Source: Cyanophora paradoxa CCMP329 (lineage: Eukaryota; Plantae; Glaucophyta). From it: a DNA stretch of 64,000 nt. Below, in pieces: positions 16,458-23,815 of the stretch. Position 1 is the first letter of the stretch, and each line of letters begins with the position of its first letter. The stretch spans positions 248,001-312,000 of the forward strand of contig QPMI01000010.1 in NCBI GenBank assembly GCA_004431415.1. Direction: 5' to 3'. The position numbers and the translations under genes were made by a program. The notes below the pieces were generated by a model, which was not told the origin of the DNA, did no database searches, and was given only the letters and a program-made list of their open reading frames with translations.

Positions 16458-16652
16458 CCCGCCCCATCGATATCGTGGCATCCTGGCATGGCCGGCTCGC
16501 GATCGACTCGGCGAGTCCCCAGCCCCCCCAGGCCGGCCCTTCCCCGGGCCCCCTCCGTTGCACATTTGGAAAGCTCTTTCGGATTTTAATTGTAACTAGG
16601 TATACGGGGCTCGTGGAAAGCGGCGAGGGGAGGGGAGAGGGGGAGGGGGAGA

Positions 16653-16680
16653 GGGGGGGGGGGGGGGGGGGGGGGGGGGG
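16653..16680 (+). repeat. Poly-G tract between convergent gene ends
   Basis: About 28 consecutive G preceded by GA-rich repeats. Confidence 0.9.
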
Positions 16681-17010
16681 AGCTGGAAGGGCCAGGAGTC
16701 AGGGTTGGAGCATAGCGTCACAATTCGCCGAACATAATATTAATAAAGCACGTGGCGTTGCCACAACTTGCCAGTTGGCCTAATTGTGTCATGAAATCGC
16801 GGCCGCGGCCGGCTGTGCCCACAACCCGTGCCTAGAGCATGTGGCAGAAACAGCAAGACTGAAATACCATGATGGCAGCTTCAATAAGAGACGAGACTAA
16901 GAATACAGATAAGATAACAGGTTGCGGAGGGGGGCGCGAAGACGACCAATAATAGGGGCGCCGGAAGGCGCAATAGCGCGCGCCCCGCCTCCGCCCTCCC
17001 CTAAGGTGAG

Positions 17011-20000
17011 CTAAGAAGAGCACTGGCTGGTGTACTGCAGGACCTGCTCCCACAGCACGTTCTTCCCGTCGTCCTTGATCTGACGTGGGGCGGAGCCGGC
17101 TCAGAAACGGACAGACGCGTGCGGGCCCAGCGCAGATTCAAAGGCGCCGCGCGGATTCGAACCTGGACGGTGACCGTCTTGAGCTTGGGGTCGAACGCGA
17201 GCTTGGTGTACGTGCGCGCCTCCTGCAGCGTGCCTGCACGCGGCCGCCCGGCGGGCGGTCAGCCGGGGTCTAAGACAGAGTCGGGCGGGCGGGCGCACCC
17301 CAGGTGAAGGGGACGCGGAAGGAGGAGGAGACGGCGGCGCGGTTGGGCGGGGCGGCGGCGGGCCCGACGAGGACCTCCGGAAGGAAGAAGTCGTAGTTCG
17401 CCACCCGGCTCTGCGAACGAAGCGAACGAAGCGAACGTTAGTGGAGAGCAGCGAGTGCGGATCGCGCTCTAGGTCTTCTTCTTGTAGCTTCTATCTATCT
17501 ATCTATCTCTGAATTCTGTAGCGTCTTGTAGGGGGAGAGGGAGGAGAGGGAGGGGGATACAAGCGCCGAGCGGAGGGAGAGGGGGGTACACGCGCGCACC
17601 ATCGTGGAGGTGACGTTTGCGATGCCGGAGAGCTGCACTCCCCCCGAGACGAAGAGCACGCACTTCTTGGCGTCCGTCGCGAGGAACCTGACGAGGTCGC
17701 TGCCCTGGTCGACGGCGTACCCCGGCCAGAACCAGCCGAGCGCGTTGCGGACGTCGACGCCGACGCTGGAGACGTCGACGGTCGGGCCGCCCTGCAGCAC
17801 CACCTGCAGAGAGTAATACACTTATATAAGAAGAACGGAGATCAAAGATAGAAAGATAGATGGGGAACCTTGAAGGTGGCGGTGGATGCCTTGATCTCGG
17901 CCTTGAGCTGCGAGAGCGTGTCCGCGCTCACCAGCTGCCTCGGCGTCCTGTCCCCACGGCCGGCCGCCAGCGTCAGTCTCTCGGTCCGGGTCGGGCGCTC
18001 CGCCGCGCGGCGCGGAGATTTGTTTTTACTCGAAAATTCCTAGCTTAATTAAGCAGTTTTCTGCAATCGGCTCTAGAACTTTGGCCGCACGCGCACCGCT
18101 CGGATCGGAGGTCAACGACGAAGAGGTCAAGCGTGGTGCCCCACGAGAGCTTCCGGAGCGCCTTGCTGCTCGCCATCGGCACCGCCTCCTGCACGGGCGA
18201 GCGGGCCGGGCCGGGTCGCCCCCCGTCAGCTCTCTTCGCGCCAAAGCGGTCGGCTGTGAAGGCGGACCTTCATCGCATCACGGGCCCGGCTCTGCCGCTC
18301 GGCGTCGGTGATGACGGGAGCACCCGCTAGGGCGAGCTGTTGGACTGCAGGGCGATGGGAGGCATAAACGTCGGGCGCAAGCGGTGGGGCGGGGCGGAAA
18401 AGCGCACTGTTCATCGAGGTTTTCGCTGCGAGCGCTGCGCGCGCATTGTGCACGTCAGCTGGTGGCGAGAATCGCGACAACGGGGCGCGTGCGTGCGCAC
18501 CGTTCGGGTCGTAGTACGAGCCGTACTCTTTGTCGGACCACGTCGCGGCGACGGAGGCGGAGTGGAACAGGGCCTGCACGTTCTCGCGCCGGAGCTGTGC
18601 GCTCCACTCGGACCTGAAGTAGGACGGGTTGGCGGTGGTGTTGACGGCCGGGTCCGCGTAGATGGTGTCGCCGGCCAGCAAAAGGAAGTCGAACTTCTCC
18701 TCGGCGGCGCGCTCCAGGACGGTGTCGGGGAACCGCGAGTTGTAGATGGCGCCTACCGCGCCCAGCGTCACGATGCGCTTGGTCGAGTCGGCGTTGCCCA
18801 TCGTGCGGAAGCGAACGATGGCGGAGCGGCCGGTCGACGTGGAGACCCACGCGTTGTACAGGGTGTCGGCCTTGAGGCCCGTCAGCGTGACGGTGAAGAG
18901 CGCGTCCGGCCCGGTCGGCGTCCCGTCGTTGTATGTTAGGTCCGTACTGCCTGAAATGGGGTCCGCAGGACTCCCCCACGTCGTGCCCGAGGCTGCAACA
19001 TAACGGAGAGACAGGCTGCCGGGCCCTCTGGCCCTGGCGACGAACTGCGCCGTCGTGTCGGTGACGTCGCCGACCTGGAGGCCCCACGCGAAGACGTCCT
19101 TGAGAAGGGGCTGGGTGGGTTCGTAGGAGACCGTCGGCTCGGCCCCGCGCGACGGCGCCGGCTCGAGCGGGGCGTCCCCGCCGCGGCGGGCGGCGCGCCC
19201 GGCGGCGGCGATGATGATGATGACGAGGATGAACCAGAGGACGGAGAGGCAGCAGGACCACTTGGCGAGTTTCTTGGCCTTCTCCGAGCGGCTGTTGCGG
19301 TACTTGCAGAAGTTGATGCAGCAGAGGATGCCGCACAGGAATCCGGTGATGAAGAGCAGCTGCGCGTTGGCGGCCTCCTTGCGGATCTTCCGCTCCTCCG
19401 TCTCGTCCTTCACGTGCTCCTCCTCCTCCGTGACCTGACAAAGAAAGAAGAAGTTAGGCGAGCTTCAAAGAGGTAAGGGACGAGCTCACCTTCATGAAGA
19501 CCTCCTCGAGGGTGGTGAGGGAGAGCTGGATGTCGGTGATGTGCATCTGCTCCTTGACCGCCTCGAACCGCTCGAAGAAGTCGGGGAGCTGCGGCGGGCG
19601 CGTAAGACCGGCGCGTGCATCAGCGTAGACGGGGAGGGCGTGGTTGTGGGCACCTCGGGGATCTTCTCGCGGGGTACGCGGAACTGCCAGCAGCCGGGGA
19701 GCACCGCCGCCACCTGCGCCGCGCCGCGCCGCGCCGCGTCGGGATCCCGGGCCGGGCCGACGCTTCCAGACAAGGTCGAAAGAAGGGAGCGTACCTCGGC
19801 GCCGCGGAGCTCGCGCTCGACGAAGGAGCGGACCTCGTCGCCGATCTTGCGGCCCTCCGCCTCCGTCCGCTGCGCGCGCCGAGGACGACGGCAACGTCAG
19901 CCAGGCCACCGCCCGCCCGCCCGCCCGCCCCTTAATTCTGTGGCGTCAGGTCGTGGCGCACGTGCTCGTAGAGGAGGGTCATGCGGTAGCCCGTCCCGAA

Positions 20001-23000
20001 CTTGTTCTTGAGGCGCAGCGACGTCCCCAGCACCGACACGCGCCCCGCCTGCGGGGCCCGACGAGGCCCGGTCAGCCTCGGGGTCCAGCTAGGTCTCTCT
20101 GGCCGGCCGGCTGGGAGCTGCTAGCTTCTTCTAGGTCCAGCTAGCTAGTTAGATCCAGCCGGCGGGCGGGCGGGCGGGCGGGCCTTCATGATGCCGATGC
20201 GGTCGCCGAGGATGTCGGCCTCCTCCATCGAGTGCGTCGTCAGCACGATCACGCGGTCCCTGTGGCGGAGAGTGAGTGGGGCGGGCGGGCGGGGCGGGGC
20301 GGGGCGGAGAGGGTGAGGCGGGGAGAGAGGGGCGGGCGGGCGGGCGCACCGCTTGACCTTCTCGATGAGGTTCCAGACCTGCCGCCGCGACACGGGGTCC
20401 ATCCCCGTCGTCGGCTGCGCGCAGAGCACAGAGTCAGAACAAGAACGACATCGAAGAACGACGGGCGCGCCTCGTCGAGGAAGACGATGCCCGGGTTGCC
20501 GATGAGGGCGATGGCGACCGAGAGGCGGCGCCGCATGCCCCCCGAGTATGCCCCCGCGGGCACGTTGCCCGACGAGGTCAGCTCGACGTCCTTGAGGCGC
20601 TCCTCGACCTCCTCCTCGATCCGGTTCCGCGGCACGCCCTGCGGGGGCGGGCCGGGTCAGCCGCAGAGAATCGCGGAGAATCGTAGGGTGGGATGGCTCG
20701 GCTCGGCTTGGCTTCGAAGCCCGAGCCGAGCCGGCCCGGCCCTAGCTAGCTCGACGAAGACTTAGGCGCACCTTGAAGCCGGCGTAGATGCGGAGGTGGT
20801 CGCGCCCGCTCAGGTCGTTCCAGAGGATGTCGTGCTGCGGGCACACGCCCATGATCTGCGGGGGCGCGGAAGCAAGCAAGGGCGTGAGAAAGCAAGCGGG
20901 CGACGAAAGCAGCGAGAGGCGGAGCGCGCCTTGCGGATCTTGTCCATGTCCTTGATGATGGAGTGCCCGAAGATAGTCGCATCGCCCACGGTCGGCTTGA
21001 AGAGGCCCGTGAGCATGCTGCGGATAAATAAGATCAGCGGTGGAATCAATCGGGATCGATCGAATCGGCTGCCTCACTTGAAGGTGGTGGTCTTGCCGGC
21101 GCCGTTGTGGCCGAGCAGGCAGAAGAGCTTGCCCTCCTCCATCGTGAGCCAGGTGCCCTTGACGGCGACGAACTCGGTCGTCGGGTCCGCGATCAGGCCC
21201 AGCGTCCGCTTCATGTACCTGAGTTCGAGAGAAAGGTCAGATCGGATCGGATACGATCTGATCTGACCTGATCCGATCGCGCACGTCTTTCGCAGGTTCA
21301 TAATCTTGACGGCGGTGTGCGGGGGCGCCTGGTTGCTGCGCAGCATCTGCTCCTCGTTGCGGATGTCCTCGTCCATGTCGGCGCGCTGCTCGTTCGGGAC
21401 GTTAGGGGGGTACGCTGCGTCGTTCAGGGGGTACGCGCGCACGTCCTCGGGGGACATGAAGTCGGTCTGGTCGATGTGCTCCGTGTGGTCCTCCTTGCCC
21501 GTCCAGTACGAGGGGTACAGGAAGTAGAACGGACCCTTCGTCTGCCCGTAGTGCGCTGCGGTTCGGGAGTTCAGAATCGAACGGAGCGGTTAGTAACCGA
21601 CGGCAGTTAGTAACTGACAGGGGATGACGTTGTCGAGGTAGAGGGCGAGGACGAGGTACAGGAAGAAGTCCAGGATGAGCCACTGGTACGTGTTGTTCAT
21701 GGACCAGTTGTTGTCCGAGGCCGTTACCTTCGCGTCCATTCGCTCGGCCCAGCGCAGGCCGACGTCGGACTGCTTGGAGGAGACGTCCCCCAGGTCCTTG
21801 AGGCCCTTGCCCAGAAGGCACATCGGGAGCAGCGCGAAGGCGCGCCCGATGGCGAGCGAGACGGCGTCGTTGTAGATCTGCTGCGCCAGCGACTGCAGGA
21901 TGATGCCCACCACGAAGATGACGAAGCCTGTTCGTCCAAACAAACGAACGACAGAAGTCAAACAACAACGCCGCGGAGAGAGTAGTAGAAGGGCTCGTTA
22001 CCCAGCGAGGCGGCTGTGGACGCCTTGGAGATGACCGTCGAGACGAAGAAGGCGAGGGAAACCATGGCGAGGCCGAAGAGGAAGAAGAGGAAGAAGTACG
22101 TCGGGAAGTCGTTCTTGAGGAAGAACCCGAACTGGAAGATGGCCCCGGACACGATGATGATCAGGCCCGTCAGCCTGCGCGAAATCGTTCGGGATTCGCG
22201 GATCGAATCTGGATGAAATCTTTTCTTGCGCACGTGTTCCAGGCGAGGTTCGTGATACCCCACGTGAGCCAGTACGCGGAATCCTTAAGGCCCATCTGGC
22301 GCATGCCCTCGCGAAGCTTCAACTCCTGCTCCATCACAATCTGCAGCGGACGGGCGGCGGCCCGGGTCGGACACTGCGCGCGCGCGCGCCCCCGAGAAGC
22401 GGCCCCGCGCGAGATCGAACCTGGGAGATCTGGATCACGAAGTTGAACATGAGCGCGCCGAAGATGAAGACGGGGCCGTACAGGGCCACGGCTGCGGGGG
22501 TACGGGTTGGGATCGGCGGGGACGGGGGTACGGAGTTTTGCGGGGCGCACCGCTCAGGGAGAGCAGCTCGCGGTGCGGGTACTCGACCTTCGTCACCTCG
22601 AGGGTGGTATCCTGCGACCGGGGCGGGTTGGGCGAGGGGTACGATGCGAGGCAAAGCTTTCACTTGGGGCCGGGGCGCGGCGCACCAGCATGCCGGTCGC
22701 CTCGCAGGCCGCCTGGTCGAGCTTTGCATCCATGCAGCGCGCCTGGAAGCTCACTGCGCCGCCGCCGCCGCCGCCGCGTCGGCGCGGGCGCGCCGCGGGG
22801 CACGGGGCGGGGGGCGGGGCGCACGGATCTCGCGCTCAACGGCCAGCTGGAGGGGAATGGCGTACGCCTCGACGACTCGGATCGGGCGGCCGCGGCGGTA
22901 GATCTGCGTCTGGTTGTACTGTGGTGCGGGGCGGGGCGAGTCAGGCCGGGCAGTCAGGCGGGCGTAGGGGCGAGCGAGCGAGCGAGCGAGCCTGCAGCGA

Positions 23001-23815
23001 GTAGGAGATCTGGAGCGGCGCCGACCGGGGGTCCTTCTCGTTCGCGTGGACGATGTCAAAGACGACGGCTCCGGCGGTCGAGTTGGGGTTCTGCGGCGAG
23101 GCGGCTCGGGCGCGTGCCCCCCGCGCGGGCGGCGCGGCGCGGCGCGGGCCGCGGATGGCGCACCGCCAGAAGGAACGTGTCGATTTGCGCGGCGGAGTCG
23201 AAGGCCTTCACCTCGGACTCTGGGATGTTGTTCCGTATGCGGATTTGATCTACGAGCAGCTTCGCCGCCCAGTCGTCGGACGGAGCCCACGCGACTGTGA
23301 TGCACGAGGTCGCCCGCGCGTTGGGAATGCAGCGCGTGAGCGTCGACGGCATCACCGTCTCCTTCCCCTTCGTCACTGCGCAGCGGGGGCGGCTGAGCTA
23401 AGAAAGGAACGCGAAAGGAACGGAGGCGCCCGCGTGCGCACCGACGCTGGTTGCAGGCCCCAGCACGGCATTCTGCTTCAGCGCAAACTGGAGGAGGAAG
23501 ATCTGCGTGCGGGGCGGTGCGCCTTAGAACGCGTGAAGCGGCAACGAGAGGCGGCGGGCGCGGCGCGCACGGCAAGCACGAAGATGAAGGGTGCGATAAG
23601 CTGAATGATGGTGCTCTTCTTGTTCCGCCTCTGCGCCGCGGTCTTTCAGGCCCCGACGAGCGAGGGCACGCGCAGGACGAACCGTGAGCGACCAGTTCTT
23701 GCTGCGCCGCGGCAAGAAGGGGTCAGAATCTGCTTGCTGAGAGGACGGTGCGGGCCACGCACTACAGCAGGATCTCGCACTGCCGCACGAAGCCGCGGAA
23801 CCCGTCGAGTCCCAT
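17011..23815 (-). CDS. ABCA-family half-transporter (plant ABCA2/ATH1-like) fused C-terminally to a membrane anchor and a degenerate PhoD-like phosphatase domain
   Basis: N-terminus MGLDGFRGFVRQCEILLYKNWSLTRRNKKSTIIQLIAPFIF. TMD motifs IVMEQELKLREGMRQMGL and LYLVLALYLDNVIP. NBD motifs [41 protein letters not shown]|PTTGMDP, LTTHSMEEADILGDRI and LTTLEEVFMK. The GT-AG intron ~19490-19436 joins in frame to VTEEEEHVKDETEE..., then PhoD motifs (FAWGLQVGDVT, FLLLAGDTIYAD, LDLFVVDLRSER, ASTATFKVV). It ends in TAG at 17013-17011. Confidence 0.88.

Follow-up and report, generated by a model that had tools for sequence, protein, structure and literature searches.

ABCA transporters move phospholipids and sterols. 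In human ABCA3, ABCA4, ABCA1 and ABCA7, as in the half-size ABCAs of plants and protists, a membrane domain precedes an ATPase domain with intact motifs, and an exoplasmic domain lies between the first two transmembrane (TM) helices, TM1 and TM2; to our knowledge, no characterised ABCA carries an additional TM segment and a folded domain after its ATPase and regulatory region. Plasmodium GAP50, a metallophosphatase fold held by a membrane anchor, serves as a non-catalytic anchor, as the title of its structure entry also indicates. Bacillus subtilis PhoD, which is secreted, and the Streptomyces PhoD-type phospholipase D combine an N-terminal beta-sandwich with a metallophosphatase core, and membrane-anchored eukaryotic PhoDs are represented by Babesia PhoD and by Phaeodactylum PtPhos5 and PtPhos6, described in the context of phospholipid remodelling (PMC10907312). 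In these eukaryotic enzymes a TM helix places the PhoD domain on an endomembrane or the plasma membrane, the metal ligands are retained and no transporter is attached. Here we analyse a 64,000-nucleotide stretch of the glaucophyte Cyanophora paradoxa CCMP329 (contig QPMI01000010.1, positions 248,001 to 312,000; hereafter the window, whose numbering is used throughout), in which a gene encodes a single ABCA half continuing, past the usual end of such proteins, into a membrane anchor followed by a PhoD-like domain of 470 residues.

The gene lies on the minus strand at 17011–23815 and comprises 34 coding exons for 1402 residues, from the ATG at 23815–23813 to the TAG at 17013–17011. This structure was obtained by exact mapping of the public EukProt protein P0001 (Cyanophora paradoxa tig00000057_g89.t1, 1402 aa), which an exhaustive HMMER search returned as 100% identical across the large exon described below and all of whose residues fall on exons between 23815 and 17011. 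The exons were searched one by one, and whole-protein analyses use P0001. In the minus-strand reading of 16800–20200, the last ABCA exon (19490–19588; supported by the sequence, transcript contigs and the P0001 mapping) ends in ...TTLEEVFMK at 19490, and the frame resumes at 19434 with VTEEEEHVKDE. Between them lies a 55-nt, phase-0 intron (GTGAGC...TTTGTCAG, with a pyrimidine tract) that opens with GT at 19489–19488 and closes with AG at 19436–19435. The first-pass annotation had recognised this in-frame GT-AG junction, FMK|VTEEE, within approximate bounds that are now refined to 19489–19435. If the intron were retained, a stop would follow 11 codons on, at the TAA 19456–19454 (open reading frame (ORF) end 19454).

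Contigs of sequencing runs mapped onto 16600–22500 (5901 bases) carry the junction. The runs, all of one organism, are taken to be RNA, a guess that the spliced joints in them support; they contain about half of the words sampled from the sequence, as exons alone would give, and two runs at about 0.9 are DNA-like. The 55-nt skip, 19432->19488 (cut +2; plus-strand ends CT..AC), is found in contigs of runs X1, X5 and X8, from three studies, which also contain all other predicted joints. The DNA-like run X15 retains the intron and shows no spliced joint anywhere in 16600–22500. Single contigs of X1 (4590 nt) and X5 (4597 nt) extend from beyond 22492 to 16895 and 16863, respectively, so the 3' untranslated region (UTR) spans 16863–17010 as far as the contigs reach; their lengths are consistent with a coding sequence of 4209 nt and short UTRs. 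Taken with the exact public model and with uninterrupted ORFs of this architecture in other eukaryotes, these contigs bear out the in-frame fusion: it is a real, expressed, single-transcript gene of C. paradoxa. The earlier exon account holds for the run of the PhoD part to its stop at 17011, but it had overlooked a 27-nt microexon at 18434–18408 (ALAAKTSMN, residues ~1160–1168), whose joint 18434->18501 and loose end at 18408 are present in contigs and which is also part of P0001.

Judging by its domains and motifs, the ABCA part is half-size: it has a single membrane domain and a single, intact ATPase domain. The membrane-domain exons (21620–23815, residues 1–462; assigned by Pfam and alignment) encode TM1, an exoplasmic domain of about 192 residues (52–243) bounded by the hydrophobic helices TM1 and TM2, and the remaining helices up to TM6; Pfam places ABC2_membrane_3 at residues 29–456 (E 7e-21). 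The exoplasmic domain can be aligned across the related fusions considered below and has an invariant Cys pair and N-x-S/T sites. The exons of the nucleotide-binding domain (NBD), i.e. the ATPase, and of the regulatory region (19490–21553, residues 464–848) include the Pfam domain ABC_tran at 556–697 (E 4.8e-26) and intact Walker A (GHNGAGKTT, 570), signature (YSGGMRRRLS, 669), Walker B (IVFLDEPT, 689) and H-loop (LTTHSMEEA, 722) motifs. The top 13 solved sequences matched by residues 1–846 are those of ABCA3, ABCA4, ABCA1 and ABCA7 (E 2.7e-165 to 1e-127), with the next class at about 1e-47. Residues 209–846 align to the first half of ABCA3 (E 2.7e-165), and the match stops where that half ends. 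Identification of this region as an ABCA half-transporter thus stands on both its Pfam domains and its solved relatives, and such a half-size protein presumably forms a homodimer.

Downstream of the junction, the large exon (18501–19434; residues 849–1159 plus one base) encodes an acidic linker, two hydrophobic segments, an N-terminal beta-sandwich and the first half of the PhoD-like core. On the whole protein, Pfam recognises PhoD (PF09423) at 1087–1317 (E 2.9e-12, 46.8 bits vs a cut-off of 27), and exon by exon it remains below threshold (16.2 and 14.2 bits). An AlphaFold2 model of residues 930–1402, built from 88 sequences, has a pLDDT of 86 and a pTM of 0.91, and among solved structures it is closest to B. 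subtilis PhoD (2YEQ, chain 2yeq_A; Foldseek E 3.6e-25, TM-score 0.70), on which it superposes with a VIA-align Z of 33.2 and a root-mean-square deviation (rmsd) of 3.2 A over 410 residues. Purple acid phosphatases (PAPs) come next. GAP50 (PDB 3TGH) reaches Z 23.2 to the model but belongs to another, PAP-like subfamily, with no match of the N-terminal sandwich and no transporter part. A single-sequence phmmer search of 930–1402 against PDB chains missed PhoD, for which a 22-sequence profile was needed. The domain had been described as a full PhoD_N plus PhoD fold; the PhoD core is confirmed by Pfam and by the structural match, whereas Pfam PhoD_N has no match on P0001 and the N-terminal beta-sandwich, shared with B. 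subtilis PhoD and the Streptomyces enzyme, is indicated by a weak Pur_ac_phosph_N match together with the agreement in fold. Among free-standing proteins, the closest relatives are alkaline phosphatase D proteins of bacteria, which have Tat-like leaders.

The metal centre of PhoD, an Fe3+ and two Ca2+ ions, is where the Cyanophora domain departs from this template. Ligand states were read from profile-based alignments and a MAFFT alignment, with the motif register set by profile alignment to 2YEQ (chain C124 = C180, D151/Y154 = D207/Y210, D209/D210 = D265/D266, N215/N216 = N271/N272). Asp1104 and Tyr1107, equivalent to D207 and Y210, are kept within AGDTIYAD (18652–18675; GDTIYAD at residues 1103–1109), and Asp1149 is kept in place of D266. 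The Fe-ligand Cys C180 is replaced by Ala1077 in LGAVGAIY (18742–18765), which holds no Cys in LGAVGA. Where PhoD has TWDDHEVxNNW, Cyanophora has TWSDKEYGSYY (18511–18543; WSDKE at residues 1147–1151): D265 becomes Ser1148, the His becomes Lys1150, and the Asn pair N271 and N272 is replaced by Ser1154 and Tyr1155. Finally, SGGVQLSG (17624–17647; SGGVQ at residues 1304–1308) takes the place of SGDxHxG, converting D436 to Gly1306 and H438 to Gln1308. The motif changes noted at first pass (GDTIYAD kept, WSDKE and GGVQ substituted, SC and NN gone) are all confirmed, and six of the nine ligand positions are replaced. In B. subtilis PhoD, activity is lost in each of the mutants C180A, D265A, N271A, N272A and D436A and falls drastically in D207A and D266A (PMC4223295). 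With six of the nine ligands exchanged, including four at sites that are each essential to PhoD, loss of PhoD-type catalysis is a well-supported prediction, and the earlier designation of the domain as a pseudo-enzyme finds its basis here.

This architecture is not confined to Cyanophora. The large-exon search and two region-restricted searches uncovered at least ten other fusions of an ABCA half, a TM segment and a PhoD-like domain, each encoded by one ORF, in eukaryotes that are uncultured or unidentified, which answers the question of whether the same layout occurs elsewhere. ABC2_membrane_3, ABC_tran and PhoD are together present in P0019 (1393 aa), P0142 (1331 aa), P0151–P0156 (1331–1496 aa), the 1353-aa P0169 and P0173, P0045 (1742 aa) and P0050, a fragment. 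Complete fusion ORFs occur on metatranscriptome contigs of transcript size (P0045 on 5.5 kb, P0151 on 4.4 kb), and in other cases genomic contigs carry the fusion as a gene without interruptions. The relatives' own contigs therefore show the fusion independently of the Cyanophora gene model.

Twelve of the sequences compared are ligand-poor. SGGxQ/L stands in place of GDxH in 10 of them (P0169 has AGGLQ, and P0050 no such motif), the Cys is absent from 11 of the 12, at least one Asp of WDD is lost in 11 of the 12, and both Asn are gone. No ligand position is kept throughout this set: GD has become GN in three sequences, Y has become F in three, and WND has become WNQ in one. Non-ligand residues of the pocket, namely W1147, E1151 and an LD..ER motif, are conserved across the family. 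P0045 has all ligand motifs intact (ATSCLG, GDTVYAD, WDDHEVYNDW and SGDFHFG) and a strong Pfam PhoD match (E 2.7e-42). A maximum-likelihood tree built from 88 domains unites P0050 and the four full-length ligand-poor fusions that it includes in one clade (SH-aLRT 98), and a single origin of the fusion is possible on this phylogeny. Comparison of three relatives gives saturated synonymous sites (proportion of synonymous differences, pS, 0.72–0.83), which leaves only the contrast with nonsynonymous differences (pN) usable; pN is about 0.30 in the PhoD-like part against about 0.20 in the ABCA part. With pN at ~0.30 against saturated synonymous sites at a pS of about 0.75, the PhoD-like domain is therefore maintained under constraint.

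Several features of individual relatives deserve mention. P0045 (L001/L002; ERR1719163 and ERR1719456) is marine, comes from 5.5-kb contigs of two runs and has a linker of 360 residues with several hydrophobic segments; a homologue search with P0045 returned P0045 alone. A ligand-poor domain without an ABC part occurs in the amoebozoan Nolandella sp. AFSM9 (EukProt P0158), behind an N-terminal signal anchor and with a Pro/Ala/Leu-rich insertion of about 290 residues ahead of its W.GY motif. P0142 (XP_049848739.1) is labelled Schistocerca gregaria; its gene occupies 8001–12239 of L007 (JAKZLS010000268.1 of GCA_023897955.2), an unplaced scaffold of 115 kb whose genes lie a few hundred bases from one another, which would appear to be DNA of an associated microbial eukaryote within the locust assembly. 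The order Na_Ca_ex, 89-aa gene, ABCA-PhoD fusion is common to two different contigs, L003 (2098–10182) and L008 (1–6008), so that P0019 and P0154 derive from related genomes in which synteny is conserved.

The side of the membrane on which the PhoD-like domain lies depends on the segments that follow the ATPase. A simple scan with Hessa-scale 19-mers, run from the end of the ATPase to the RFRT motif, found exactly one strong hydrophobic 19-mer in nine relatives, with 5–7 Lys/Arg (K/R) in the 15 residues before it and 0–4 after it; unlike these nine, P0045 has more than one hydrophobic segment in its linker. Since the NBD is cytosolic and a single TM follows it in the nine relatives, their PhoD-like domain is non-cytosolic, and the type II anchor of Nolandella P0158 agrees with this placement. 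The Cyanophora counterpart of this TM is the helix 909–927 (19198–19254; Hessa sum -3.6), with six K/R before it and three after. It is preceded by hydrophobic segment 1, the Cys/Gly-rich residues 873–891 (19306–19362), marginal for insertion (Hessa sum +0.93) and absent from all other fusions examined, and by a basic loop, KYRNSRSEKAKKLAKWS (19255–19305, residues 892–908), with the motif NS.SE.A.K.AK.S. We consider segment 1 likely to be re-entrant or acylated and not membrane-spanning, with the domain outside. The outward or luminal orientation predicted earlier thus has indirect support from the single TM of the relatives and from Nolandella, and is less certain in Cyanophora itself, given the extra marginal segment.

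The unit formed by segment 1, the KYRNSRSEKAKKLAKWS loop and the second segment resembles small membrane proteins of 87–132 aa from unidentified samples (P0117, P0119, P0125 and P0137; E ~4e-5 to 2e-4, over query positions 11–76), which share the loop motif and have Q/N-rich N-termini. Neither the hairpin nor these small proteins gave a Pfam match above threshold, CD225, Frag1 and others being weak; CD225 on residues 873–927 (E 0.032, 14.8 bits vs 27.1) covers only the end of the loop and the second helix and is a lead only. An ESM Atlas feature search of the hairpin 856–932 returned no usable match. An undescribed small-membrane-protein module may have been recruited into the Cyanophora linker.

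Based on the above data, the explanation that we favour, and hold to be somewhat probable overall, is that this protein belongs to an old, conserved eukaryotic family made up of an ABCA half, a membrane anchor and a non-catalytic PhoD-like domain. In the proposed arrangement, the half-size ABCA would work as a homodimer, and the C-terminal PhoD fold, no longer able to build the Fe/Ca/Ca centre, would be non-catalytic and placed on the non-cytosolic face beside the exoplasmic domain of the transporter. There it could act as a tethered module that binds or accepts the phosphate-bearing head group of the pumped lipid. We propose head-group binding because the solved ABCA relatives are phospholipid transporters, the PhoD relatives include a phospholipase D, and the pocket residues are conserved. 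The family may descend from an ancestral 'flop and cleave' arrangement, ligand-complete in one marine relative, P0045. A more specific version, in which an ABCA floppase hands a phospholipid, on the outer or luminal leaflet, over to the PhoD-type phosphodiesterase tethered to it, an arrangement still ligand-complete in P0045, and in which the hydrolase of the Cyanophora and amoeba-type clade became a non-catalytic head-group receptor accepting, gating or sensing the substrate, is speculative and, as a whole, doubtful.

Several points limit the case for the non-catalytic, outward-facing module. Two hydrophobic segments follow the Cyanophora NBD, and the domain would be cytosolic if both spanned the membrane; Asp1104, Tyr1107 and Asp1149 remain, and a reduced metal site is conceivable; P0045 falls outside the ligand-poor clade and is not resolved as its sister in the tree of 88 domains, so that one ancestral active fusion is no more than a possibility; contigs cannot prove a single molecule, and they leave room for a minor intron-retaining isoform that would encode an ABCA-only protein; and a docking prediction of the exoplasmic domain (52–243) against the PhoD-like domain (930–1402), in which the supplied alignments went unused, scored 0.00, a result that is evidence in neither direction. 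The first of these points carries the alternative in which both Cyanophora segments cross the membrane and the PhoD-like domain sits in the cytosol next to the ATPase, with a regulatory or scaffold role. Stretches 873–891 and 909–927 are indeed both present, the pair with its loop looks like the two-segment small membrane proteins, and the domain itself has only two N-x-S/T sites and few Cys, in keeping with a cytosolic site. Against this, segment 1 is marginal beside a strong segment 2, the seven K/R of the intervening loop would keep that loop cytosolic by the positive-inside rule, and the nine single-TM relatives and the type II anchor of Nolandella point the other way. A true two-pass hairpin with a cytosolic domain is therefore rather unlikely in our view, and the full scenario, including a regulatory or scaffold function, is unlikely too.

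The retained residues, in turn, would be the core of an enzyme that persists in altered form, with a reduced or different metal site assembled from Asp1104, Tyr1107, Asp1149 and new residues and performing some other hydrolysis of the transported lipid. Retention of three ligand positions, an intact fold modelled with high confidence and the family-wide conservation of W1147, E1151 and LD..ER would all fit such an enzyme. We nevertheless judge it improbable, given that, at four of the replaced positions, the original residue is by itself indispensable to B. subtilis PhoD and that no ligand position is constant in the ligand-poor clade. As for the limits of contig evidence, they are what lends substance to a merely apparent fusion, produced by read-through of neighbours, by assembly of overlapping transcripts or by a decaying PhoD relic. 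The splice is in phase, however, and exon 19434–18501 (311 codons) has its first ATG only at ...RFRTMGNADS, well inside the PhoD-like fold, which makes an independent start of the PhoD part unlikely, and we rejected such a start on these grounds. The architecture also recurs as uninterrupted ORFs on genomic and transcript contigs of other eukaryotes, and the domain is constrained and confidently folded; a decaying relic was rejected on its conservation and its confident fold. An apparent fusion thus strikes us as very improbable, and the tethered, non-catalytic PhoD-like domain on an ABCA half is the reading that we retain.

The remainder of the locus can be described briefly. The PhoD-like core is completed by seven exons after the microexon (17011–18344: 18344–18268, 18188–18097, 17947–17869, 17803–17600, 17410–17299, 17233–17163 and 17079–17011). 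The donors flanking the microexon are of the GTGCGC type, and the joint 20414->20471 (intron 20415–20470) has plus-strand ends CT..GC, i.e. a GC-AG intron on the gene strand. At 20146–20342, ~19898–19938 and 17528–17558, introns hold (GCCC)n-like and C-rich simple repeats, and the zero contig depth over these repeats reflects repeat-skipping in the mapping; an (ATAG)n run lies in an intron near 17490–17510. Nine long ORFs in the flanks (6–15 kb and 25–35 kb of the window) matched no Pfam family and provide no neighbour context.

Full-text searches of the literature turned up no account of an ABCA-PhoD fusion, which upholds the statement in the first-pass annotation that none had been described. 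That statement is to be qualified, however: the gene model is public, the relatives carry the automatic JGI name 'ABC-type multidrug transport system ATPase subunit/phosphodiesterase/alkaline phosphatase D-like', and the fusion represents a conserved family instead of a Cyanophora oddity. Compared with B. subtilis PhoD, the Cyanophora domain has lost most of its Fe/Ca ligands and is tethered to a transporter; unlike Babesia PhoD and PtPhos5/6, it combines this loss with the fusion.

The ABCA-PhoD fusion is a real, conserved and uncharacterised architecture, spread over one glaucophyte and several unidentified microbial eukaryotes, with a non-fused, ligand-poor relative in an amoebozoan. It adds a eukaryotic branch to PhoD, a family whose enzymes are central to the scavenging of phosphorus, and its ligand-complete and ligand-poor versions constitute a natural experiment in the passage from enzyme to accessory domain. 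An extra membrane pass and a phosphoesterase-derived domain after the ATPase make an unusual ABC layout, one that physically links lipid export to a head-group-recognising fold. How the exoplasmic parts of ABCAs receive lipid is a live structural question, and the proposed mechanism, if true, would give a lipid exporter an extracellular acceptor domain of its own, taken over from a bacterial-type phosphatase.

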